From the sequence record MT135026.1: a DNA stretch of 64,000 bases; one strand, given 5' to 3'. Positions 37,344-47,209 of the stretch are shown here, in pieces; position 1 is the first letter of the stretch; the number at the start of each line of letters is the position of its first letter. Position numbers and translations under genes: made by a program. Below the pieces are notes generated by a model. The model ran no database searches and was not told the origin of the DNA. It saw nothing but the letters and a program-made list of their open reading frames with translations.

Positions 37344-37610
37344 ATGTCACAACAAACTCCAGAACAAGTAATCGAACAGAAAGACGCGCAAATCAAAGAT
37401 CTGAAAGTTCGTACATTTGACTTGCAAGAAGCACTTCAAGCTGAACGCAATTCATTTGGTCAATTCGTTGGTGTACTAGCTCAACTGCTAGACTTCGATC
37501 AAGAAAAAGCAAGTTCTCTACAGAACTATGTTGATGAAGTCGCTTATCTAACCGGTAAAGCTGAACGCCCTGTAGAAGGCGACGGCGAAAAAGAGAAAGA
37601 AGCTGAATAA
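37344..37610 (+). CDS. 57A: Tail fibre chaperone gp57A
   Basis: 88 aa acidic coiled coil (LKVRTFDLQE) between gene 1 and 57B. Confidence 0.8.
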   Translation: MSQQTPEQVIEQKDAQIKDLKVRTFDLQEALQAERNSFGQFVGVLAQLLDFDQEKASSLQNYVDEVAYLTGKAERPVEGDGEKEKEAE

Positions 37611-38065
37611 TGAAACTATCTAAGTTCCTTGAGAGTCAGGGAACTTACGTTGGTATCAAATTAGACGAAGCAAGTAAGCAAGAGCTAGTTCGCTTGCAAA
37701 AAACGCTTCGTCTAAAAAATCCGTTAGATCCAGATAAATTCCACGTGACTGTGCTTTATAGTCGTAAGCAAATTGATGTGCCCGTTGTAGATACCACTTT
37801 CGTTGCCACTGTTGAACAAGTTGACTGTTGGAAAACGCAAGACGGTAAACACGCGGTCGTTGCTAAGATGTCATGTCCTGCTCTTGTAGAACGTCACGAA
37901 GACCTTATCTCTATCGGTGGTACTCACGATTACCCTGACTATACTCCGCACGTCACATTGTCTTATGACGACGTAATCACCCCTATGTTCATCAATACAG
38001 AGGTTCGGCTTGTCGATGAATATATCGAACCATTAGATCTAGAATGGGTTGCTAATAATGACTGA
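37610..38065 (+). CDS. 57B: gp57B, 2H phosphoesterase (Acb1 anti-CBASS family)
   Basis: Two HxT motifs (FHVTVLYS, PHVTLSY); GTYVGIK N-terminus; synteny 1-57A-57B. Confidence 0.92.
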   Translation: MKLSKFLESQGTYVGIKLDEASKQELVRLQKTLRLKNPLDPDKFHVTVLYSRKQIDVPVVDTTFVATVEQVDCWKTQDGKHAVVAKMSCPALVERHEDLISIGGTHDYPDYTPHVTLSYDDVITPMFINTEVRLVDEYIEPLDLEWVANND

Positions 38066-38312
38066 TCTATCTACCGAAGCGGTGCTGAAGAAGTACAATG
38101 AATCGCCTGAAACGCTGACGACTGATGAGAACGTTGTTCTACTAACGTACATCATTGGTATGCAGACCGATCAGATTGCTTTGCTTAAAGAGAACAACAA
38201 GCTTTATGACAAAGCTATTATTGAACTTCAGCAAGCAGTATCACAACTTCAGATCAAGCACGCTGCGCTTGAACGAGGTGAGACTGAAAGCGGCATTATC
38301 ATTTCCGTTTAA
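38058..38312 (+). CDS. Hypothetical coiled-coil protein
   Basis: ATG 38058 overlapping the 57B end; plausible composition. Confidence 0.7.
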   Translation: MTDLSTEAVLKKYNESPETLTTDENVVLLTYIIGMQTDQIALLKENNKLYDKAIIELQQAVSQLQIKHAALERGETESGIIISV

Positions 38313-38328
38313 AAAGTTAAAATAGTTG

Positions 38329-38449
38329 TTGACTTCATCTGAAAAGGATGTAGAATGTATTTCATCGAGTCGAGAGACAGAAAACAAACTTTCAACTCGA
38401 TGAAATATTTGAAAAAAGATGTTGACTTTCGCTGAGAAGCTGATAAGAT
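38329..38449 (+). promoter_or_regulatory. Two tandem sigma70 promoters heading the RNA cluster
   Basis: TTGACT-16-TAGAAT (38329) and TTGACT-16-TAAGAT with extended TG (38422). Confidence 0.75.
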
Positions 38450-38457
38450 TAACACAG

Positions 38458-38562
38458 TTGATTAAGCGAGCTAAGTTCATCGTTCTCGCCTCTTCTTGAA
38501 GATGAACAACATTGATTAAACAGACTAGACTCATCGTTTCTGTCTCTTCTCTGAAGATGAGT
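38458..38562 (+). repeat. Two tandem ~54-nt units, each an H-type pseudoknot
   Basis: TTGATTAA leader; S1 GCGAG/CTCGC vs ACAGA/TCTGT, S2 GTTCATC/GATGAAC vs ACTCATC/GATGAGT; loops conserved. Confidence 0.8.
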
Positions 38563-38563
38563 A

Positions 38564-38715
38564 ATATTTTAAATGTGCGTTAGCCGAAATGAATACATAG
38601 AGCCAGTATAAGTTCTGGCATGCAGAGAATAGTCTTAGCGGACGATGTCTCAAACAAAAACTAGCTGAGTTAAAATTCGCTCAGTCGGCGTGCAAGTAGC
38701 GCACATTTAAAATAT
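38564..38715 (+). ncRNA. ~140-nt structured RNA
   Basis: 16-bp perfect terminal stem; inner GCCGA/TCGGC, GCCAG/CTGGC, CTGAG/CTCAG. Confidence 0.65.
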
Positions 38716-38730
38716 CGAGAGTATATTGGT

Positions 38731-38853
38731 CGAGTGTTGGTGTAGTGGCAGCACACGTAGCATACTGTAATCAGACATGATTATATTCAGCAACCAATTT
38801 ACGCATATCATAGGGAGATCGTGGGAACGGTTCGATTCCGTTACACTCGACCA
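38731..38853 (+). ncRNA. Interrupted tRNA-Pro(AGG)-like gene; 49-nt insert (38758-38806) between positions 28 and 29
   Basis: Removing the insert gives CG|ATC-ATAGGGA-GATCG; acceptor CGAGTGT/ACACTCG, A73, CCA, T arm AACGG-TTCGATT-CCGTT. Confidence 0.8.
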
Positions 38854-39120
38854 ATGTACTCTCACTTATTAAGCGAGGTGAGCAATTTGATTGTATATCT
38901 TCTCGCACTGGTATTCATAGTCCTCTTTGCCTTGGACATTGAAGAAGAAACGGTGCGTAGCTGTTCTACGCTAATCACATGCGAACGGGTCATTCATCCC
39001 GTAATTAAAGCGCACGATTCCAGATTGTGTTGTGATTAGCTAAGGCAAATATAAACTAGAGGATTTTGTGCTTGCGTAGTGAAGAATCGATCTGCGTAAG
39101 CACGCCCAAGAACATATTGA

Positions 39121-39243
39121 GCAGGGTTGGTGTAGTGGCTAGCACACGTAGCATAAACGCAAACTGTTAAGTTTGTATTCTGCAATCAATTCGCATATCA
39201 TTTCAAGATCGTGACGCAGGTTCGAATCCTGCACCCTGCTCAA
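39121..39243 (+). ncRNA. Interrupted tRNA-Glu(TTC)-like gene; 48-nt insert (39149-39196) at 28/29
   Basis: CG|ATC-ATTTCAA-GATCG; acceptor GCAGGGT/ACCCTGC; no encoded CCA. Confidence 0.8.
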
Positions 39244-39255
39244 TATGTTTTTATG

Positions 39256-39368
39256 GTGAAGTTAGTTCAGTTGGTTAGAATGCCGGCCTAAACAATAGAA
39301 GTCTGTTAAGATTTCATGCTGCATTTTATGCACGCCGGAGGTCGCAGGTTCGAGTCCTGTACTTCACC
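39256..39368 (+). ncRNA. Interrupted tRNA-like gene (Asp-type body, loop reconstitutes as CT-TGC-AC); 39-nt insert in the anticodon loop
   Basis: CCGGC-CT|insert 39290-39328|TGCAC-GCCGG; T arm GCAGG-TTCGAGT-CCTGT; junction ambiguous; no CCA. Confidence 0.75.
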
Positions 39369-39378
39369 CTCAAATTCT

Positions 39379-39502
39379 GGAGAGTTAGCTCAGTCTGGTA
39401 GAGCAAAAGAATGTTAAAGAATACTGACAAGCATTCATGCTGCAAACCTTAATAACTAGGTAAATCTTTTGGTCGGTGGTTCAAATCCATCACTCTCCAC
39501 CA
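39379..39502 (+). ncRNA. Interrupted tRNA-Tyr(GTA)/Asn-like gene; 47-nt insert in the anticodon loop
   Basis: AAAGA-AT|insert 39413-39459|GTAAA-TCTTT; acceptor GGAGAGT/ACTCTCC, CCA. Confidence 0.78.
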
Positions 39503-39983: not shown

Positions 39984-40012
39984 TTGACAGGCGTTTCGTC
40001 AACGTGTAGTAT
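39984..40012 (+). promoter_or_regulatory. sigma70 promoter
   Basis: TTGACA-17-TAGTAT. Confidence 0.8.
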
Positions 40013-40280: not shown

Positions 40281-40520
40281 GCCGCTAACTGGTGTACAAT
40301 ACGCAGTGTTTTCCCAACATTAGTGCAGACATAGGTTCGCAACCTGTGTTGGTACCGAATCACTGGGACCGAGTAGAAAGTGCGTGTGAGTTGTCGAAAG
40401 CTCACACGTAGAAATAACGCTCGAATGCTCCGAAATGCTGATTAGCTCTTACTTCGAAACTCTAATTGGGTGGACGAGGTGTTGTGTTTGACGTGTGTTC
40501 GATTCACACGAGCGGCGCCA
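40281..40520 (+). ncRNA. 240-nt RNA with tRNA-like ends (tmRNA-shaped)
   Basis: GCCGCT/AGCGGC acceptor, G73-CCA, GAC + GTGTG-TTCGATT-CACAC T arm, exit helix ACAATAC/GTGTTGT. Confidence 0.7.
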
Positions 40521-40533
40521 AGAGGAAATTATA

Positions 40534-41055
40534 ATGAAACCATTGAAATTCGCACAAGCGTTTTCGAAAGAAGAACGCGCTGCAATGTCTCCTGAAGTAC
40601 GCAATAAACTGCGTGCTGAGTATAACGCTCGTTACCAAGAGTACATTGACAAGCACGTTAACGTGTACGTACGAAAAGATTTTCGACGTGAGCGTTGTTG
40701 GGTTATTCTTGCTAGATGTAAGAAGACTGGTAAAATTGTCGGTGAGATTGAAAACAGCTTCAGTATGGGCTGGTCTAAGGAGCGAGTGCGTGTTATTCGA
40801 CCGTACCTCGGGCGTGTCTTTGCAAGCAATGAACGCTTCTCTAAAGCTGATTACAACAAAGCTTGTGCAGAGTATATCGCTAACTACGATAAGCGCGTAA
40901 AGGAGCTTAGAGAGCGTTACAGCGAGACTCACGATGTCTTTATCGCTCGTGTGGGGAGTAAGAACTGTCCTATTGCTATTGATTGGGGCACGTTCTATAG
41001 CACAAAGAACAAACGAAACTTTGACTGGCGTAATTTGAAGTTCAAAGTTAAATAA
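40534..41055 (+). CDS. Hypothetical basic protein
   Basis: GAGG SD, ATG 40534 just after the 240-nt RNA. Confidence 0.75.
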   Translation: MKPLKFAQAFSKEERAAMSPEVRNKLRAEYNARYQEYIDKHVNVYVRKDFRRERCWVILARCKKTGKIVGEIENSFSMGWSKERVRVIRPYLGRVFASNERFSKADYNKACAEYIANYDKRVKELRERYSETHDVFIARVGSKNCPIAIDWGTFYSTKNKRNFDWRNLKFKVK

Positions 41056-41060
41056 TTCAT

Positions 41061-41176
41061 AGTCGGGTAGCTCAGTGGTAGAGCACGAAGAATGATACTG
41101 ACAAGTATCGCTCCAGCACTCCTTCAATTGCCTGTTAAGCACGTGGTCGCTGGTTCGAATCCAGCCCCGACTACCA
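41061..41176 (+). ncRNA. Interrupted tRNA-Asn(GTT)-like gene; 41-nt insert (41088-41128) at 28/29
   Basis: CG|TGC-CTGTTAA-GCACG is a perfect arm once the insert is removed; acceptor AGTCGGG/CCCGACT, CCA. Confidence 0.82.
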
Positions 41177-41435: not shown

Positions 41436-41804
41436 GAAAATCGCAGAAAATTGAATTTTTTTTTCAATTTTCTGCGAAAATACCGCAAATCGTCAAATTT
41501 GGTGTTATAAGTACTATTATACAAACAAAAACATTTTTATTTTAACGTTTAGAGAGTTTCCATGACACATTCGAATACACATTCTGATATGATTTTACGC
41601 AGCGATTTTCTGCGCTCAGAATTCGTGTATCTAGCGAATCCGTGTGCGAAACAAGAGTGGTCTCCACAAACGTAGTCCAATAGTATAACATAGAAGTATA
41701 CTTGAGGACGCACGTAGCGTCCTTTTTTATGGGCGAAGAAAAATCAAAAATTTTGTTTAACGTACTTTGAAAGCAGAGTATGATAAACAAAGTTAAAGAA
41801 CAAA

Positions 41805-41878
41805 CGGGACGTGGCGTAAAGGTAGCGTTCATGCTTTGGGAGCATGTGGTAAGAGTTCGAGTCTCTTCGTCCCGACCA
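41805..41878 (+). tRNA. tRNA-Pro (TGG)
   Basis: CATGC-TTTGGGA-GCATG, C1-G72, A73, CCA. Confidence 0.93.
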
Positions 41879-41887
41879 ATTTAAAAT

Positions 41888-41964
41888 CCGTGACTAGCTC
41901 AATCTGGTAGAGTACTCCGTTTGGGGCGGAGAAGTTAAGCGTTCGAATCGCTTGTCACGGACCA
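41888..41964 (+). tRNA. tRNA-Pro (TGG), second copy
   Basis: CTCCG-TTTGGGG-CGGAG, CCA. Confidence 0.93.
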
Positions 41965-41971
41965 GTTTAAT

Positions 41972-42047
41972 GCCCGATTAGCTCAATTGGAAGAGCAGCG
42001 CCCTACGAAGGCGAAGGTTACAAGTTCGAATCTTGTATTGGGTGCCA
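41972..42047 (+). tRNA. tRNA-Arg (ACG)
   Basis: GCGCC-CTACGAA-GGCGA, CCA. Confidence 0.93.
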
Positions 42048-42050
42048 TAT

Positions 42051-42178
42051 TTCAGAATGCCTAGAAATGGGGAAATGCAGAGTTGCAACATACTCGGTAG
42101 AGAATAATTGATAGCCTCTGGCAACAACTGTTAGTTTACGCTATTACTCGAAGTGAGTTCAAGTCTCACCATTCTGAA
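42051..42178 (+). ncRNA. ~127-nt tRNA-like RNA
   Basis: TTCAGAATG/CATTCTGAA stem, T arm GTGAG-TTCAAGT-CTCAC, non-canonical middle, no CCA. Confidence 0.65.
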
Positions 42179-42343
42179 TTGATTTGATACGCTTAGGACC
42201 GTATCTCGTTAAGTACTGTCGTGATGATAGAATTTAACGAACTTTTTCACAAATTAGTGTTTAAGATGTCTTGATCGAGTGTTAAGATTAACACATAGAA
42301 AAATGAAAACGTTAAGTTCTTCAAAATAAATTCAAAAAAAGAT

Positions 42344-42373
42344 GTTTACAACGATATAAACATCATGTACAAT
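42344..42373 (+). promoter_or_regulatory. Early-type promoter for the tRNA sub-cluster
   Basis: GTTTACA-17-TACAAT with an A-tract upstream. Confidence 0.78.
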
Positions 42374-42400
42374 GAAGAAAAGAAGTTTACAAAATTTAAT

Positions 42401-42477
42401 GCGCATGTAGCCCAATTGGCAGAGGCACTGGTCTTAGAAGCCAGAAGTTAAGAGTTCGACTCTCTTCATGCGTACCA
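42401..42477 (+). tRNA. tRNA-Leu (TAG), short variable arm
   Basis: CTGGT-CTTAGAA-GCCAG, variable region AAGTT, A73, CCA. Confidence 0.9.
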
Positions 42478-42478
42478 T

Positions 42479-42553
42479 GCACCCTTAGCTTATCAGGAAA
42501 AGCGGCGGATTGAAGTCCCGCAGTGCTCGGTTCGATTCCGAGGGGGTGCACCA
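42479..42553 (+). tRNA. tRNA-Phe (GAA)
   Basis: GCGGA-TTGAAGT-CCCGC, CCA. Confidence 0.88.
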
Positions 42554-42559
42554 CATTCT

Positions 42560-42633
42560 GGGTCTATGATGTAATGGTAGCATATGGGACTTTTAATCCT
42601 TCAGTCAGAGTTCGAATCTCTGTGGACCCACCA
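42560..42633 (+). tRNA. tRNA-Lys (TTT)
   Basis: TGGGA-CTTTTAA-TCCTT, CCA. Confidence 0.9.
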
Positions 42634-42740
42634 TATTCAAAGATACTAAAGAGTATCTGTTAGCCTACTAGCTGGGCCCGTTAAATGATTATCTCAGCTA
42701 ACTTGCTAACTTGCTAGTTTGCTAACAAATACTTTTTAAT

Positions 42741-42815
42741 TCTCCCGTGGACTAACGGTAGGTCATCACCCTTTCAAGGTGAAGTGCGCGAGTTCGAATC
42801 TCGTCGGGAGAACCA
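42741..42815 (+). tRNA. tRNA-Glu (TTC)
   Basis: TCACC-CTTTCAA-GGTGA, CCA. Confidence 0.92.
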
Positions 42816-42821
42816 AATTAT

Positions 42822-42907
42822 GGAGCGTATGCGCCAAGGTGGCGCAGGGGACTGTAAATCCCTGACCCTTAACGGGTAGAGAGGTTCGATTCCTCTACGC
42901 TCCACCA
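42822..42907 (+). tRNA. tRNA-Tyr (GTA)
   Basis: GGGGA-CTGTAAA-TCCCT, long variable arm, CCA. Confidence 0.92.
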
Positions 42908-42912
42908 GTTTT

Positions 42913-43000
42913 AGCTTGCATACTGCAATTTAACTTACTCTATTGATCGCTCGACGAACTCAGTTCAGACAGCGATAAACAGACCAAAGAACGCAAGCTG
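42913..43000 (+). ncRNA. CWGCAA-motif RNA (88 nt)
   Basis: AGCTTGC-ATA-CTGCAA ... GCAAGCT-G. Confidence 0.7.
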
Positions 43001-43009
43001 TTGAATAAT

Positions 43010-43086
43010 TGCGGGGTAGAGAAGTGGTCATCTCGTCGGTCTCATAAGCCGGAGAACGCTGGTTCGAATCCAGCCCCACGCAACCA
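43010..43086 (+). tRNA. tRNA-fMet-like (CAT)
   Basis: TGCGGGG acceptor, TCGGT-CTCATAA-GCCGG, CGCAACCA end; one extra A in the 3' acceptor strand. Confidence 0.85.
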
Positions 43087-43093
43087 AATTAAT

Positions 43094-43192
43094 GGAAGGC
43101 TTAGCCGAAAGATTCTGGGTAGCGGCAACGGTCTTGAAAACCGTCGGTCACCGGGAGGTGATGTTAGGGTTCGAATCCCTAGTCTTCCGCCA
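43094..43192 (+). tRNA. tRNA-Ser (TGA)
   Basis: ACGGT-CTTGAAA-ACCGT, long variable arm, enlarged D loop, G73, CCA. Confidence 0.88.
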
Positions 43193-43256
43193 ATTAGTTA
43201 ACCGGGAAGTTTAGTCACTTAACCGATTAACACGAGCACTGAAATGTGCTCACTTT

Positions 43257-43330
43257 AGCTCCATAGTTTAACGGTAAAACACGCGACCGATAATCGCACG
43301 TTGACAGTTCGAGTCTGTCTGGGGCTACCA
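43257..43330 (+). tRNA. tRNA-Ile (GAT)
   Basis: GCGA-CCGATAA-TCGC (C33), CCA. Confidence 0.88.
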
Positions 43331-43337
43331 AATTTTT

Positions 43338-43411
43338 AGGGGCATGATGTAAAGGCAGCATGACGGATTCCAAACCCGTTCGTTAGAGTTCGAATCTCTA
43401 TGCCCCTGCCA
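43338..43411 (+). tRNA. tRNA-Trp (CCA)
   Basis: ACGGA-TTCCAAA-CCCGT, G73, CCA. Confidence 0.9.
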
Positions 43412-43427
43412 ATTATCAGAGGTGTTT

Positions 43428-43616
43428 ATGTACAGACTAGTGATGGTAATGAATGATTCGACTGTTGTCAAGTCGAGCGCATTAGCTTGTGACAATAACA
43501 AATCTGAATTCGGTTACGAAGATCGCTCGATTGAGCGAAAGGCTAAAATGTTAGCTAAACGAATCGAAAAGTTTGACGATGTTGACTCTTGTAAAGTTGA
43601 GAAGTTTACATCGTAA
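43428..43616 (+). CDS. Hypothetical protein
   Basis: GAGGTG SD, ATG 43428, between tRNA-Trp and a motif RNA. Confidence 0.65.
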   Translation: MYRLVMVMNDSTVVKSSALACDNNKSEFGYEDRSIERKAKMLAKRIEKFDDVDSCKVEKFTS

Positions 43617-43623
43617 CAGAATT

Positions 43624-43683
43624 AAGCAATCTTTCAGCAAACAATACAAAACTTTTATTTGGAAAAAGAGAAAAGGATTGCTG
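43624..43683 (+). ncRNA. CWGCAA-motif RNA (60 nt) with an anticodon-like hairpin
   Basis: AGCAATCT-TT-CAGCAA ... CTTTT-ATTTGGA-AAAAG ... GGATTGCT-G. Confidence 0.7.
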
Positions 43684-43694
43684 TTTAATTTAAA

Positions 43695-43769
43695 GGGTGT
43701 GTAGCTCAGAGGCAGAGCAGACGGCTGTTAACCGTCAGGTCGAGATTTCGAAATTCTCCACGCCCGCCA
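43695..43769 (+). tRNA. tRNA-Asn (GTT)
   Basis: GACGG-CTGTTAA-CCGTC, G73, CCA. Confidence 0.92.
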
Positions 43770-43775
43770 TATTTT

Positions 43776-43851
43776 GCCTTATTAACTCAGTCGGTAGAGT
43801 GTCTGGCTGTTAACCAGAGAGTCGTTGGTTCGAGTCCAACATAAGGCGCCA
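43776..43851 (+). tRNA. tRNA-Asn (GTT), second copy
   Basis: TCTGG-CTGTTAA-CCAGA, G73, CCA. Confidence 0.92.
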
Positions 43852-44073
43852 GTTTGACCATGACAATGTTTGAGAGCGTTGGTTGCGATGTCTGCTTGTG
43901 TGCAGAGATTTGAAACCTCCTGCATAGCAAGATCTCACTTTCATAGCATTTGTTAAAAACAAGAACGATGATGCCCTTTAGCGAGGGAATGCGTAGTACA
44001 ACTAAGAAATCAAGAAGTCGTTCAGCTAGTGTTTGGTTTGCACGAGCACAAAGCAACGTTAAGTTGTCTTTGG

Positions 44074-44149
44074 GGAGCCGAGGTGTAAGTGGTTGCATGT
44101 CTCCCTGTCACGGAGAAGGTAGCGGGTTCGAAACCCGTCGGTTCCGCCA
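44074..44149 (+). tRNA. tRNA-Asp (GTC)
   Basis: TCTCC-CTGTCAC-GGAGA, G73, CCA. Confidence 0.92.
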
Positions 44150-44168
44150 AAGATAATTTAAGAATAAT

Positions 44169-44242
44169 AGGGGATTGATGTAAAGGCAGCATACGTGACT
44201 TTGACTCACGCAGTACCGGTTCGAATCCGTTATCCCCTGCCA
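44169..44242 (+). tRNA. tRNA-Gln (TTG)
   Basis: CGTGA-CTTTGAC-TCACG, G73, CCA. Confidence 0.92.
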
Positions 44243-44250
44243 AATACCGA

Positions 44251-44367
44251 AGAGTGTTTTCAGCAAACAATTTACTAATATTCTTCTGATGAAAAGAAAT
44301 GTTTGGGGTTCGATTCCCTTTCAGTGTTGGTATCACTGGTCTGGACGACGCAAGTAATAACACTCAG
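44251..44367 (+). ncRNA. CWGCAA-motif RNA with anticodon-like and T-arm-like hairpins
   Basis: GAGTGTT/AACACTC stem; TTCTT-CTGATGAA-AAGAA; GGG-TTCGATT-CCC. Confidence 0.72.
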
Positions 44368-44371
44368 TAAC

Positions 44372-44447
44372 GCCCTGATAGCACAACTGGCAGTGCAGCT
44401 CACTTGTAATGAGCAGGTTCGCGGTTCAAATCCGTGTCAGGGCACCA
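44372..44447 (+). tRNA. tRNA-Thr (TGT)
   Basis: GCTCA-CTTGTAA-TGAGC, CCA. Confidence 0.93.
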
Positions 44448-44472
44448 TTTTCTAAACAACTGTGAGAATAAC

Positions 44473-44682
44473 ATGAACTATATTTCAATATGGTGTGAAT
44501 ATGACATTGGTGGCTATTTCGGTGGCAACAATAACGAAGATGCTTTTTCCGTTGATGAAAAACTATCTGATGAAGAAATTGAAGCAAAAGTTGCTGAATA
44601 TATTTCTGATATTGTTGGTGAGCCGATTGAAGAGCTTGAAGGTCTATACGGCTGGGATCATATTTCAATCACACAGTTGTAA
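44473..44682 (+). CDS. Hypothetical acidic protein
   Basis: ATG 44473 with GAGA SD, between tRNA-Thr and tRNA-Ala. Confidence 0.65.
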   Translation: MNYISIWCEYDIGGYFGGNNNEDAFSVDEKLSDEEIEAKVAEYISDIVGEPIEELEGLYGWDHISITQL

Positions 44683-44689
44683 TAATTAT

Positions 44690-44764
44690 GGGCCGTTAGC
44701 TTAATTGGGAAAGCGCCTCACTTGCAATGAGGAAGATAGGGTTCGACTCCCTGCGTGTCCACCA
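44690..44764 (+). tRNA. tRNA-Ala (TGC)
   Basis: CCTCA-CTTGCAA-TGAGG, G3:U70, imperfect acceptor stem, CCA. Confidence 0.85.
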
Positions 44765-44841
44765 AATTTCGATCACATGAGTGTAGAGTCTCTTTACTAC
44801 CATCTTCTACGCAATAGCTCATGGATCGAATTCTTTTCAAC

Positions 44842-44917
44842 GTCCTCATAGCTCAATTGGAAGAGCAACGACCTTCTAAGTCGTGGGTTGTGGGTTCGAA
44901 TCCCTCTGGGGATGCCA
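44842..44917 (+). tRNA. tRNA-Arg (TCT)
   Basis: ACGAC-CTTCTAA-GTCGT, CCA. Confidence 0.92.
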
Positions 44918-44978
44918 GATTAAGCTCTATCATGCGGCGAATGATACTTGCTTCGGCATATCACGAGCATGGTTTGAG

Positions 44979-45193
44979 AGACAATATACAGCAACAAATT
45001 AAAATCTTACTAAAAATGGTAATGATCTTAACCTGGGCAGTGCTTCGGTGCAGCTTGAAAGGAAAGATTCTCTCTGCCTAGAAATAGTCAGATAGGCGCG
45101 TCGCTGAAACAGACGATATTTGCTTGTTGAGAAGCAACAAGATAGTCAACTCCGATTCATGTTAAAGACGAAAAAACACTTCGGTATTGTCTG
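44979..45193 (+). ncRNA. CWGCAA-motif RNA (215 nt)
   Basis: AGACAATA/TATTGTCT stem; shares internal blocks with 47221-47467. Confidence 0.75.
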
Positions 45194-45422
45194 TACTTAA
45201 TTCGTCGGAAACGACACTACAGCCGAAAGGCACGATATGCTAACTCAGTTAGCCGTGATACAGGAAGTATCGCGTGGCATTATTATGAACGTTTCTAGTT
45301 ATCGTCATGTAAAACAATCAAAACTAAGATGAGGTAATAGTACCCACTATGTGGTTCCTCGCTCAGACCATGAATATATGGTGTCAGCCCGTGTGCGATT
45401 AAATGAGTTAATTACTACTTTT

Positions 45423-45498
45423 GGAGATGTAGCTCAAGTGGTAGAGCAATGGTCTCATAAGCCATTAGATCCGATTTCGAGTATCGGTGTCTCCACCA
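45423..45498 (+). tRNA. tRNA-Met (CAT), elongator-like
   Basis: ATGGT-CTCATAA-GCCAT, A73, CCA. Confidence 0.88.
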
Positions 45499-45523
45499 AA
45501 TTCAAGCAAAGAGGATAAGAAGC

Positions 45524-45681
45524 ATGACTACTTTACACTAAGCAAGGGCAACATACGCGATAAGATTCGCTGTGTTGAAAATCGTCTCGCGAAAGAGACC
45601 AACCCGTTCTTTATAAGAACACTTACTGTAGAGCTTACGAATCTGCGTGCAATACGTGATTTGTTCGACGCTTCAGATTAA
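45524..45681 (+). pseudogene. Possibly frameshifted small ORF
   Basis: SD GAGGA + ATG 45524 reads MTTLH-stop, while the long open frame (TLSKGNIRDKIRCVE...) is a different frame. Confidence 0.4.
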
Positions 45682-45685
45682 CAAT

Positions 45686-45759
45686 GCGGGTATGATGTAA
45701 TGGTAGCATGACGTCCTTCCAAGTCGTTCGTCTCGGTTCGAGTCCGTGTACCCGCTCCA
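45686..45759 (+). tRNA. tRNA-Gly (TCC)
   Basis: GCGGGTA acceptor, CTTCCAA loop, U73, CCA. Confidence 0.92.
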
Positions 45760-45764
45760 ATTTT

Positions 45765-45838
45765 GGTCCCTTAGTATAATGGCAGTACGTCTCTTTTACA
45801 CAGAGAAAGAAGTGGCTCGATTCCACTAGGGACTACCA
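45765..45838 (+). tRNA. tRNA-Val (TAC)
   Basis: TCTCT-TTTACAC-AGAGA, CCA. Confidence 0.9.
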
Positions 45839-45861
45839 TTCTTTATGATGAGAAATAAATT

Positions 45862-46101
45862 ATGACGCCTGTATTACTTGAAACTCACGAATACGTAAAT
45901 CAAAACCAAATTGAAAAACTGAAACGCATGGACAGACTTATGTTTGACTGTTGGCGCGCTGGTTATAAACGCGGTAAGATTTTAGAACGTGCTCTTGAAA
46001 TTGAGTCTTCAACAACTTCTGATGACATCGAAATTTATTTCAAAAATATGTTTACGAGAGAGCTATCGCCTGATAGTATCTACTTAAAGAAAACTGATTA
46101 A
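45862..46101 (+). CDS. Hypothetical protein
   Basis: 79 aa ORF filling the Val-His tRNA gap. Confidence 0.65.
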   Translation: MTPVLLETHEYVNQNQIEKLKRMDRLMFDCWRAGYKRGKILERALEIESSTTSDDIEIYFKNMFTRELSPDSIYLKKTD

Positions 46102-46155
46102 TGCACAGGGAGCGCATTCGTTTGATGTCGTAAACATCCCAAAGTGTACTTTGGT

Positions 46156-46232
46156 GTGGCAGTGGGTGAAGTGGAAATACCCCCGGGTTGTGATTCCGGA
46201 AGATGCGGGTTCGATCCCCGTCTGTCACCCCA
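46156..46232 (+). tRNA. tRNA-His (GTG)
   Basis: CCGGG-TTGTGAT-TCCGG, C73, CCA. Confidence 0.88.
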
Positions 46233-46335
46233 AAGTGCATTTAGCGAAAAAAGCATTGTAGTAGCGCATGGGAATTCTGAATGCTTGAAATACCCATTAA
46301 GATCGCCAGTAGCTCATGCAATGCACTAACATATT

Positions 46336-46409
46336 GCCCGAATCGTATAATGGAAGTATGAGGGATTGCAAATCCCGCGGTCAGAGTTCGATTCTCTGTT
46401 CGGGCTCCA
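46336..46409 (+). tRNA. tRNA-Cys (GCA)
   Basis: GGGA-TTGCAAA-TCCC, U73, CCA. Confidence 0.92.
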
Positions 46410-46411
46410 AT

Positions 46412-46488
46412 GCGCACGTGGTCCAATTGGCAGAGGCATGAGGCTTAAAATCTCAGGGATGGCGGTTCGAATCCGCCCGTGCGTACCA
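46412..46488 (+). tRNA. tRNA-Leu (TAA), short variable arm
   Basis: TGAGG-CTTAAAA-TCTCA, variable region GGGAT, A73, CCA. Confidence 0.9.
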
Positions 46489-46603
46489 AACTCTAGCATA
46501 AGCCGCGTTCTACACGAAGCTAGACTACCGCCGTTGAAAACGGTCTCAGCCGGGCGAAAGCTGACAGGCGTTAGGGATTAAAGAGTTGCGGCAGCTTATT
46601 CAA

Positions 46604-46680
46604 GCCCAACTAGGCCAATTGGCAGAGTCGCTAGTTTCAAACACTAGAAGTTCCGAGTTCGAATCTCGGGTTGGGCACCA
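46604..46680 (+). tRNA. tRNA-Leu (CAA), short variable arm
   Basis: CTAGT-TTCAAAC-ACTAG, variable region AAGTT, A73, CCA. Confidence 0.9.
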
Positions 46681-46902
46681 AATTCACTTAGCAACGCGAA
46701 TCGAAAGAGAGTGAATAGACCGTACGACACTATGGTCTTAAAAGAAGATATAGCTGAAAGGCTATGTGTAGACCTGCTAAGAGTCCCGCTGGTCGTTAAA
46801 TTATCAAAAGGGATCTGCGAAGCGCGTGGCACACGCCAGCAATAAGAGCAAATATGTGTCTGAGCATGAGAGCAGCATGCCACTGTTTAAAAGTCGTTCA
46901 GT

Positions 46903-46910
46903 TATAAATA
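46903..46910 (+). promoter_or_regulatory. T4-type late promoter
   Basis: TATAAATA upstream of the 59-aa ORF. Confidence 0.8.
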
Positions 46911-46935
46911 CAATAAACTAACTGAGGGATGACAA

Positions 46936-47115
46936 ATGAAACTTAAAACGTTTGATGAATATCACAAGCTTGTTGAGAAAGTCGAGAAGCGTGGCGACAA
47001 ATGGGTTGCTCTTTCATCTAAAGGTCGAGTACTTGGTACTCATGACACTGAGAAAGAAGCCAACGCGCAAATCGCTGCTGTCGAGATTAGCAAAGCAGAG
47101 CGTGGTAAGAAATGA
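46936..47115 (+). CDS. Candidate internal head protein (59 aa)
   Basis: Not in ORF track; MKLKTFDEYHKLVEKVEKRGDKWVALSSKGRVLGTHDTEKEANAQIAAVEISKAERGKK; TATAAATA at 46903-46910, GAGG SD, capsid-targeting-like N-terminus. Confidence 0.7.
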   Translation: MKLKTFDEYHKLVEKVEKRGDKWVALSSKGRVLGTHDTEKEANAQIAAVEISKAERGKK

Positions 47116-47120
47116 TCTAC

Positions 47121-47209
47121 GGAGATATGGTCTAAAGGTATGACAGCACCCTGCTAAGGTGTCGGACGTTAATAGCGTTCTCTGGGTTCGATTCCCAGTA
47201 TCTCCGCCA
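47121..47209 (+). tRNA. tRNA-Ser (GCT)
   Basis: GCACC-CTGCTAA-GGTGT, long variable arm, G73, CCA. Confidence 0.92.

Follow-up and report, generated by a model that had tools for sequence, protein, structure and literature searches.

What are the two short, repeat-like elements that stand at the head of a non-coding locus in a Vibrio phage, and what might they do there? The DNA analyzed (the window, 64,000 nt in full) comes from a KVP40-like Vibrio phage, and is 100% identical to V09 and 99.8% identical to KVP40. V09 and KVP40 are T4-type Schizotequatrovirus phages. The same locus was found in approximately 50 Vibrio phage records at 79-100% identity. Genes here run in order from dNMP kinase through a small ORF, gp57B and an 87-aa ORF to the non-coding locus. 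The gp57B gene (37610-38065) matches the anti-CBASS phosphodiesterase family Acb1 (PF23474, E 1.7e-46), so that an acb1 gene lies approximately 400 nt upstream of the RNA locus.

A protein-coding explanation of the region was ruled out, as the minus-strand frame annotated in KVP40 is not conserved, and the elements are for the same reason taken to be RNA. A 107-codon minus-strand frame that runs over them is broken in relatives. The reading frame of the KVP40.0320 ORF (38241-38534, minus strand) is not conserved, and neither are those of tiny ORFs called over the elements in QD01 and K566 (L001 1510-1734). KVP40.0320 and several tiny ORFs over the region in relatives are most likely not genes and probably artefacts of annotation.

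Two adjoining units share a plan but differ in their stems

Two units abut each other on the plus strand, with lengths of 54 and 55 nt and a combined cassette of 109 nt. Both were defined from sequence and covariation, and score 71.8 bits (unit 1, 38458-38511) and 80.9 bits (unit 2, 38512-38566) against covariance model R1. Each follows a common plan, consisting of a 5' tail, the first strand of a 5-bp stem (S1), a 4-nt loop (L1), the first strand of a 7-bp stem (S2), a GTT junction, the second strand of S1, a long loop of 11-12 nt, the second strand of S2 and a short 3' tail. In unit 1 the 5' tail (38458-65) reads TTGATTAA, S1 pairs GCGAG (38466-70) with CTCGC (38485-89), L1 is CTAA (38471-74), S2 pairs GTTCATC (38475-81) with GATGAAC (38501-07), GTT lies at 38482-84, and the long loop and 3' tail occupy 38490-38500 and 38508-11. 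In unit 2 the 5' tail (38512-19) precedes an S1 of ACAGA (38520-24) with TCTGT (38539-43), followed by L1 (38525-28), an S2 of ACTCATC (38529-35) with GATGAGT (38556-62), GTT (38536-38), the long loop (38544-55) and the 3' tail (38563-66). All letters quoted in the initial annotation of this locus are present at these positions, with the units 54 nt apart.

The two units are 71% identical overall, agreeing at 27 of 31 unpaired letters and at 12 of 24 stem letters. The compensatory changes that had been claimed between them were confirmed, with four S1 pairs and two S2 pairs changed on both sides. The long loop is rich in C and U; its A residues are the two at the 3' end and, in some relatives, no more than one other. 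Across the 17-unit alignment described below, L1 is 4-5 nt long and S1, at 5 bp, is shorter than S2, at 7 bp. A pattern of the loop letters matched exactly two sites in the window, which are units 1 and 2, and the covariance model found no further copy there; pattern scans also found no further copies elsewhere in the KVP40 genome or in the marine contigs discussed below. Tandem Repeats Finder did not report the pair, given that the two sequences agree at only 71% of positions.

Covariation supports both crossing helices

Loci were gathered from 13 relatives and three public contigs, and 17 distinct units were aligned (alignment A1). All 201 comparable stem cells form standard pairs when both crossing helices are imposed, and double, compensatory changes occur in 7 of the 12 pairs. 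When the partner strands were slid by 1-3 columns, pairing fell to 25-56%, and none of 500 shuffles attained the covariation score. Alignment A1 holds seven states of S1 and four of S2, with a fifth S2 state seen in metagenomic relatives. The single unit of phage 1.081.O combines an S1 of the unit 2 type with an S2 of the unit 1 type, each with its matching partner strand. This naturally occurring mix-and-match shows that the proposed pairing of the interleaved segments holds. Full S1 and S2 pairing was seen in none of approximately 50 chance matches to the loop letters in public collections.

The minimum-free-energy z score of the units was close to 0, as computed with a folding tool that models no pseudoknots. 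The folding energy is not significant, and the support is thus comparative and not thermodynamic. Judged by covariation, both units are genuine H-type pseudoknot RNAs. Promoters, tRNA gene orientation and G-U pairs, of which one is in S1 and others are in the neighboring RNA X, assign the RNA to the plus strand.

Conservation is concentrated outside the helices, with 17 of 31 unpaired columns invariant but only 10 of the 24 in stems. Hardly any variation is seen in the 5' tail, L1, the GTT junction, most of the long loop and the inner end of S2. Since stem letters change freely while pairing is kept, the pattern argues that the interleaved helices serve only as a scaffold and that the loops are what is selected.

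Promoters and neighboring RNAs

A consensus scan placed a sigma-70-like promoter, P2 (38422-38449, plus strand), directly before the units, with TTGACT, a 16-nt spacer, and TAAGAT preceded by TG. A gap of 8 nt separates P2 from unit 1, and transcription is predicted to start 1-2 nt ahead of unit 1. The arrangement is kept in nt-1, K566, QD01, 1.081.O and L320. That tandem covarying H-type pseudoknots lie just downstream of a promoter, as the initial annotation proposed, is fully supported, and extends to the approximately 50 phage records and to a second lineage. Another promoter, P1 (38329-38356, plus strand), lies 93 nt further upstream and is stronger than P2, with 10 of 12 matches in the promoter scan. 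Transcripts from P1 would read through P2 and both units. A conserved hairpin follows P1 (38360-70 paired with 38395-405, plus strand); both strands of its stem have changed in 1.081.O and in the metagenomic relative L324, and the hairpin is kept in L324, where the pseudoknots are absent. The stem of this hairpin and S2 of unit 1 share the letters TTCATC/GATGAA, so that an alternative pairing between hairpin and unit 1 is conceivable in P1 transcripts.

The RNAs that follow the units are non-canonical. The first, RNA X (38565-38714, plus strand), is a structured RNA of approximately 150 nt for which RNAalifold predicted 41 pairs from eight orthologues, 21 of them with double changes. It is made up of a 22-bp closing helix and three inner hairpins, and this closing helix begins within the 3' tail of unit 2, 2 nt past the last S2 base (38562). 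RNA X has no match in Rfam, and the interval it occupies is only 96 nt long in phage VH7D. Beyond it come two tRNA-like RNAs, two tRNAs with inserts, small ORFs, tRNA-Met and a third insert-bearing tRNA, in that order. The tRNA-like RNAs (38728-38855 and 39118-39250) are paralogs with acceptor, D and T arms in which approximately 55 nt replaces the anticodon arm. They were called neither by ARAGORN nor by the Rfam tRNA model, and are listed as tRNA-OTHER in some phage records.

The insert-bearing tRNA genes (39256-39368, 39379-39499 and 41061-41173 in the window, and 2298-2410 in L324) match the tRNA model end to end while carrying inserts of 44-49 nt in the anticodon loop. These inserts contain small hairpins with TGTTAA or TGACAA loops. 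Two of the genes are labeled pseudo-tRNAs in the KVP40 record; from sequence they look functional, as one is conserved in the more distant relative. An ORF inside the RNA region (40495-41052, 186 aa, phrog_15953) is also conserved. Its assignment as a Colicin_D-type tRNase was rejected, as the match was below threshold (E 0.015) and was unsupported in a PDB search. Farther along, 44690-44761 is a tRNA by the Rfam model (44.9 bits) that is missing from the ARAGORN list.

A strong hairpin resembling an intrinsic terminator lies at 41704-41724 (plus strand), and further promoter-like sites occur at 39984 and 42345. The canonical tRNAs of the main array (41805-47209) come only after this terminator, and the array has its own promoter-like sites. 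With the terminator and the additional promoters, the "RNA operon" splits into several units. The placement of the pseudoknots at its 5' end therefore holds for the first unit of approximately 3.3 kb, which contains the odd RNAs and the small ORFs, and is not provable for the whole array.

Copy number and distribution

Variation in copy number among related phages, which had been suggested as something to look for, was found, with two, one or no units per locus. Every KVP40-like locus examined has two, as do two metagenomic relatives, and phage 1.081.O has one. The more distant L324 has none and keeps P1, its hairpin and an insert-bearing tRNA.

Searches of public collections used degenerate probes derived from loop letters that were constant or nearly so in the units then collected. 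These scans demanded exact loop letters and took one genome per species, and diverged relatives would for the first reason be missed. With these patterns, the genomes of 185,579 species, each represented once, yielded no cellular copy, and 241 million metagenome records gave none apart from that of a marine element. No plasmid copy was found by blastn among 72,556 plasmids. Two loose pattern scans of IMG/VR gave chance matches inside ORFs among the matches listed, three tighter scans matched KVP40 and VH7D only, and a scan of IMG/VR for neighboring proteins gave nothing new. The unit is a single-locus element, and so is not a general processing signal repeated at each tRNA.

Rfam at permissive thresholds, over 12.5 kb and over 291 nt, gave no match to the units. 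For 38440-38730 with E up to 10, Rfam 15 returned nothing meaningful, the only hits being two snoRNA models with E of 7-10, and ARAGORN called no tRNA or tmRNA at the units. These results bear on the idea that each unit belongs to a new class of self-contained, ligand-binding aptamers or of small self-cleaving ribozymes. In size, in its H-type fold and in having an invariant junction and loops beside freely covarying stems, the unit is like small riboswitch aptamers and ribozymes, a tandem arrangement is known for some aptamers, and placement at RNA boundaries would suit self-cleavage. No riboswitch or ribozyme model was matched at E up to 10 over the 291 nt, however, and no expression platform, be it a terminator or a ribosome-binding site, lies downstream of the units. 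New classes are also rare, and we consider this explanation very improbable.

A single unit in an unrelated marine element

Apart from chance matches, the exact-pattern scans of genomes and metagenomes found a single unit on each of five marine contigs. These comprise Tara Oceans contigs, marine contigs of JGI, and one contig of 75 kb (PBMB01000011.1) that is assigned by binning to a Chloroflexota MAG. PBMB01000011.1 (L158) carries the same element as the Tara and JGI contigs (L174, L177, L188), and this is probably not host chromosome but a virus or mobile element. Besides eight tRNA genes, the element carries genes for SIR2, a metallophosphatase and DUF4942. No PHROG matches and hardly any Pfam matches were obtained for its ORFs, which have almost no relatives among cultured phages, and tblastn of all ORFs of the window against the marine contigs found no shared protein in the parts sampled.

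The marine unit shares 25-26 of 31 unpaired letters with the window units, as against 14 of 24 stem letters. The ten stem letters that differ from each window unit are spread along both helices, and the pairing is perfect. Similarity between the RNA loci of the two lineages is confined to the unit and to tRNA-like segments. The unit thus behaves as an autonomous and portable module. With just two lineages recognized so far, their near-identical loops could also reflect recent transfer and not long-term selection. In the marine element the unit lies approximately 170 nt downstream of a promoter-like site (read by eye), after another unmatched RNA stretch, and ends 9 nt upstream of a canonical tRNA-Asn(GTT). 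As this copy is single and internal to its transcript, neither the tandem state nor the extreme 5' position can be defining.

Cis-acting roles

The units lie directly behind a promoter in the vibriophages and directly ahead of a structured RNA in both lineages, a position as compatible with cis-acting roles as with a role in trans. One such role would be in maturation, with the unit acting as a folding insulator, a nuclease block or a 5'-processing guide for the next structured RNA. A distance of 2-9 nt separates the end of the unit from the terminal helix of that RNA (RNA X in the vibriophages, tRNA-Asn in the marine element), and the linkers are A/U-rich. More than 30 RNA genes lie in the region, however, and the unit accompanies just one of them, and simple insulation does not need approximately 27 invariant letters. 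Phage VH7D keeps both units despite its shortened RNA X. The 5' tail of the unit is single-stranded, which leaves the 5' end unshielded, and the single mid-transcript copy of the marine element argues against any role specific to a 5' end. We regard a maturation element as quite unlikely, and the exonuclease block or processing element that the initial annotation gave as its alternative is left unsupported.

Alternatively, the nascent pseudoknot might modify RNA polymerase or recruit Nus factors, so that the transcript resists Rho-dependent or intrinsic termination in the manner of put or boxA. In each lineage the transcription unit has the element once, close to a promoter, and the unit of transcription is mostly untranslated RNA that ends at a strong terminator. 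The put RNA of HK022 and boxA are likewise promoter-proximal elements that head long, poorly translated transcripts. The put RNA consists of two stem-loops, whereas the fold here is a pseudoknot, and no put-like Rfam match was found. At its start, the long loop is similar to the first half of GYTCTTTAANA, the boxA consensus of gamma-proteobacteria (PMC5725501). The match is partial, with 6 of 10 specified letters in the window units and up to 8 of 10 in F86, D482 and K566; the 3' half is missed everywhere and one relative alters the third loop letter, and identity with boxA was rejected on these grounds. Antitermination would also leave the invariant 5' tail, L1 and junction unexplained, and L324 keeps P1, its hairpin and a downstream tRNA while having no units. 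This role seems distinctly improbable.

Comparison with type III antitoxins

The function favored in the initial annotation was that of a type III antitoxin mimic. The units would then copy a host RNA of the ToxI, CptI or TenpI type and neutralize the matching endoribonuclease toxin, as in phage PhiTE, which carries tandem pseudoknot repeats (pseudo-ToxI) with a proposed use in anti-defence (PMC3475682). Going by published descriptions of TenpI, on which our comparison rests, TenpI is the closest analog of the units. TenpI repeats are 39-57 nt long and occur in 1.9-3.0 copies, and the family is present in the Vibrionales, with tenpIN found in Vibrio cholerae and in Alteromonadales (PMC3401426). 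The repeats are often non-identical, with both functional (PMC12283969, PMC13682666), and each has a central H-type pseudoknot with flanking single strands that occupy the toxin groove (PMC13682666).

The vibriophage cassette resembles this layout closely. It also consists of two non-identical tandem repeats of approximately 50 nt directly after a promoter, 8 nt past the -10 hexamer, and each repeat has a central H-type pseudoknot, with covariation for both crossing helices, between single strands. Its length of 109 nt is similar to the 102 nt of TenpI (PMC13682666). Single units occur in 1.081.O and in the marine element, and single repeats have been suggested for viral tenpIN loci (PMC12283969). 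The units escape Tandem Repeats Finder, as do many tenpI arrays (PMC12283969), and the anti-CBASS gene acb1 lies 400 nt upstream.

The remaining comparisons point away from mimicry. Type III loci are recognized by repeats followed by a terminator hairpin and then a toxin gene of the ToxN, CptN or TenpN type (PMC3401426), but here the units sit in a non-coding RNA operon where no terminator follows unit 2, and RNA X and the tRNA-like RNAs come next. No toxin family, of the ToxN/AbiQ type or otherwise, and no Abi family was found with Pfam, PHROGs or PADLOC among those ORFs flanking the RNA locus that were scanned (10 here and in 1.081.O, 9 in the marine element), and these neighboring ORFs gave no informative family and no candidate partner. 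In CptI and TenpI the long loop contains a run of A that makes A-minor contacts with S1, L1 is 1 nt long and S1 is longer than S2 (PMC12283969, PMC13682666). In the units, by contrast, the long loop is pyrimidine-rich, L1 has 4 nt, there is a 3-nt junction and S1 is the shorter stem. ToxI and pseudo-ToxI have in common with the units that tandem pseudoknot repeats are borne by a phage. ToxI repeats, however, are 36 nt long and nearly identical, as opposed to 54-55 nt and 71% identical here, and pseudo-ToxI resembles host ToxI, while no host sequence resembling the units was found, either in the cellular genomes (exact loop-letter patterns, one genome per species) or in the plasmids (blastn). 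The metagenome records gave no copy other than that of the marine element. In the comparison with antitoxin covariance models that had been proposed, no Rfam family was matched, whichever antitoxin families Rfam contains.

Phages of V. parahaemolyticus, V. alginolyticus, V. natriegens, V. harveyi, V. splendidus and V. crassostreae share constant loops with one another and with the unrelated marine element. Antitoxin RNAs are reported to diverge faster than their own toxins (PMC12283969). Being fast-diverging and strain-specific, they would not lead one to expect constant loops in a mimic. As the terminator-toxin layout, the A-rich loop, the 1-nt L1 and, in the collections scanned, a cellular copy are all lacking, the units are, as far as sequence can tell, not members of ToxI, CptI or TenpI. 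They belong to an RNA family not described before, with type III antitoxins, the nearest, compared by published description. Mimicry of a host antitoxin is left unsupported as the favored function; it is unlikely, and survives as a minority rival because the layout so closely resembles that of TenpI.

A module that may act in trans

We favor, tentatively and with a probability of approximately 0.4, a self-contained pseudoknot module that is made together with the tRNA-like RNAs, is then released and acts in trans, through its invariant loops, on a conserved putative partner. This reading builds on the fold, the selection on the loops, the modularity, the variable copy number and the association with operons of tRNAs and small RNAs. 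The units would be transcribed early and in quantity from P2, and from P1, together with the other non-coding RNAs. Host nucleases that mature tRNA operons would free them by cutting the short A/U-rich linkers, and the freed units would then act in trans as abundant small RNAs. Their invariant unpaired letters would bind a single partner, which may be conserved among the hosts or otherwise common to both elements; the likeliest candidates are proteins of RNA metabolism and RNA-directed nucleases. Duplication of the unit would simply raise the dose.

By analogy with type III antitoxins, the module would work as an RNA decoy or aptamer that binds a protein. The neighbors of the unit in the phage, namely RNA X, the tRNA-like RNAs and the tRNAs with anticodon-loop inserts, are also non-canonical RNAs. 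In T4, the tRNA cluster yields two stable non-tRNA RNAs, species 1 and 2, which are co-transcribed and processed with the phage tRNAs and have no assigned function. They are like the units in being non-tRNA RNAs in the tRNA operon of a T4-type phage, but are longer and are not known as pseudoknot repeats. A precedent for protein binding is TenpI itself, in which non-identical, pseudoknotted tandem repeats of approximately 50 nt bind a protein via flanking single strands (PMC13682666). Another is ribosomal protein S1, which binds assorted H-type pseudoknots (PMC7708055) and may on this precedent be a candidate partner of the module.

A narrower form of trans action would be RNA-only counter-defence. 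The units would in this case be orphan antitoxin-like decoys that trap a widespread host RNA-cutting effector, either a type III-like toxin or a tRNA-directed nuclease, beside the odd tRNA-like RNAs and acb1. We consider this possible but doubtful.

Significance

Phage tRNA clusters are now viewed as part of an arms race with host defences that target RNA, and to our knowledge the non-tRNA RNAs within them are almost unstudied. The locus described here contributes a compact motif of approximately 55 nt with textbook covariation and invariant loops, found in KVP40 and approximately 50 relatives and in an unrelated marine element. Annotation of these phages is corrected as well, since KVP40.0320 and the tiny ORFs over the region in relatives are most likely no genes. 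The motif is a defined and tractable RNA whose partner can be sought. If it were an aptamer, a ribozyme or an RNA that modifies the polymerase, it would represent a new class, and if it proves to be a true decoy for a host nuclease, RNA-based anti-defence would extend beyond the single case of PhiTE pseudo-ToxI.
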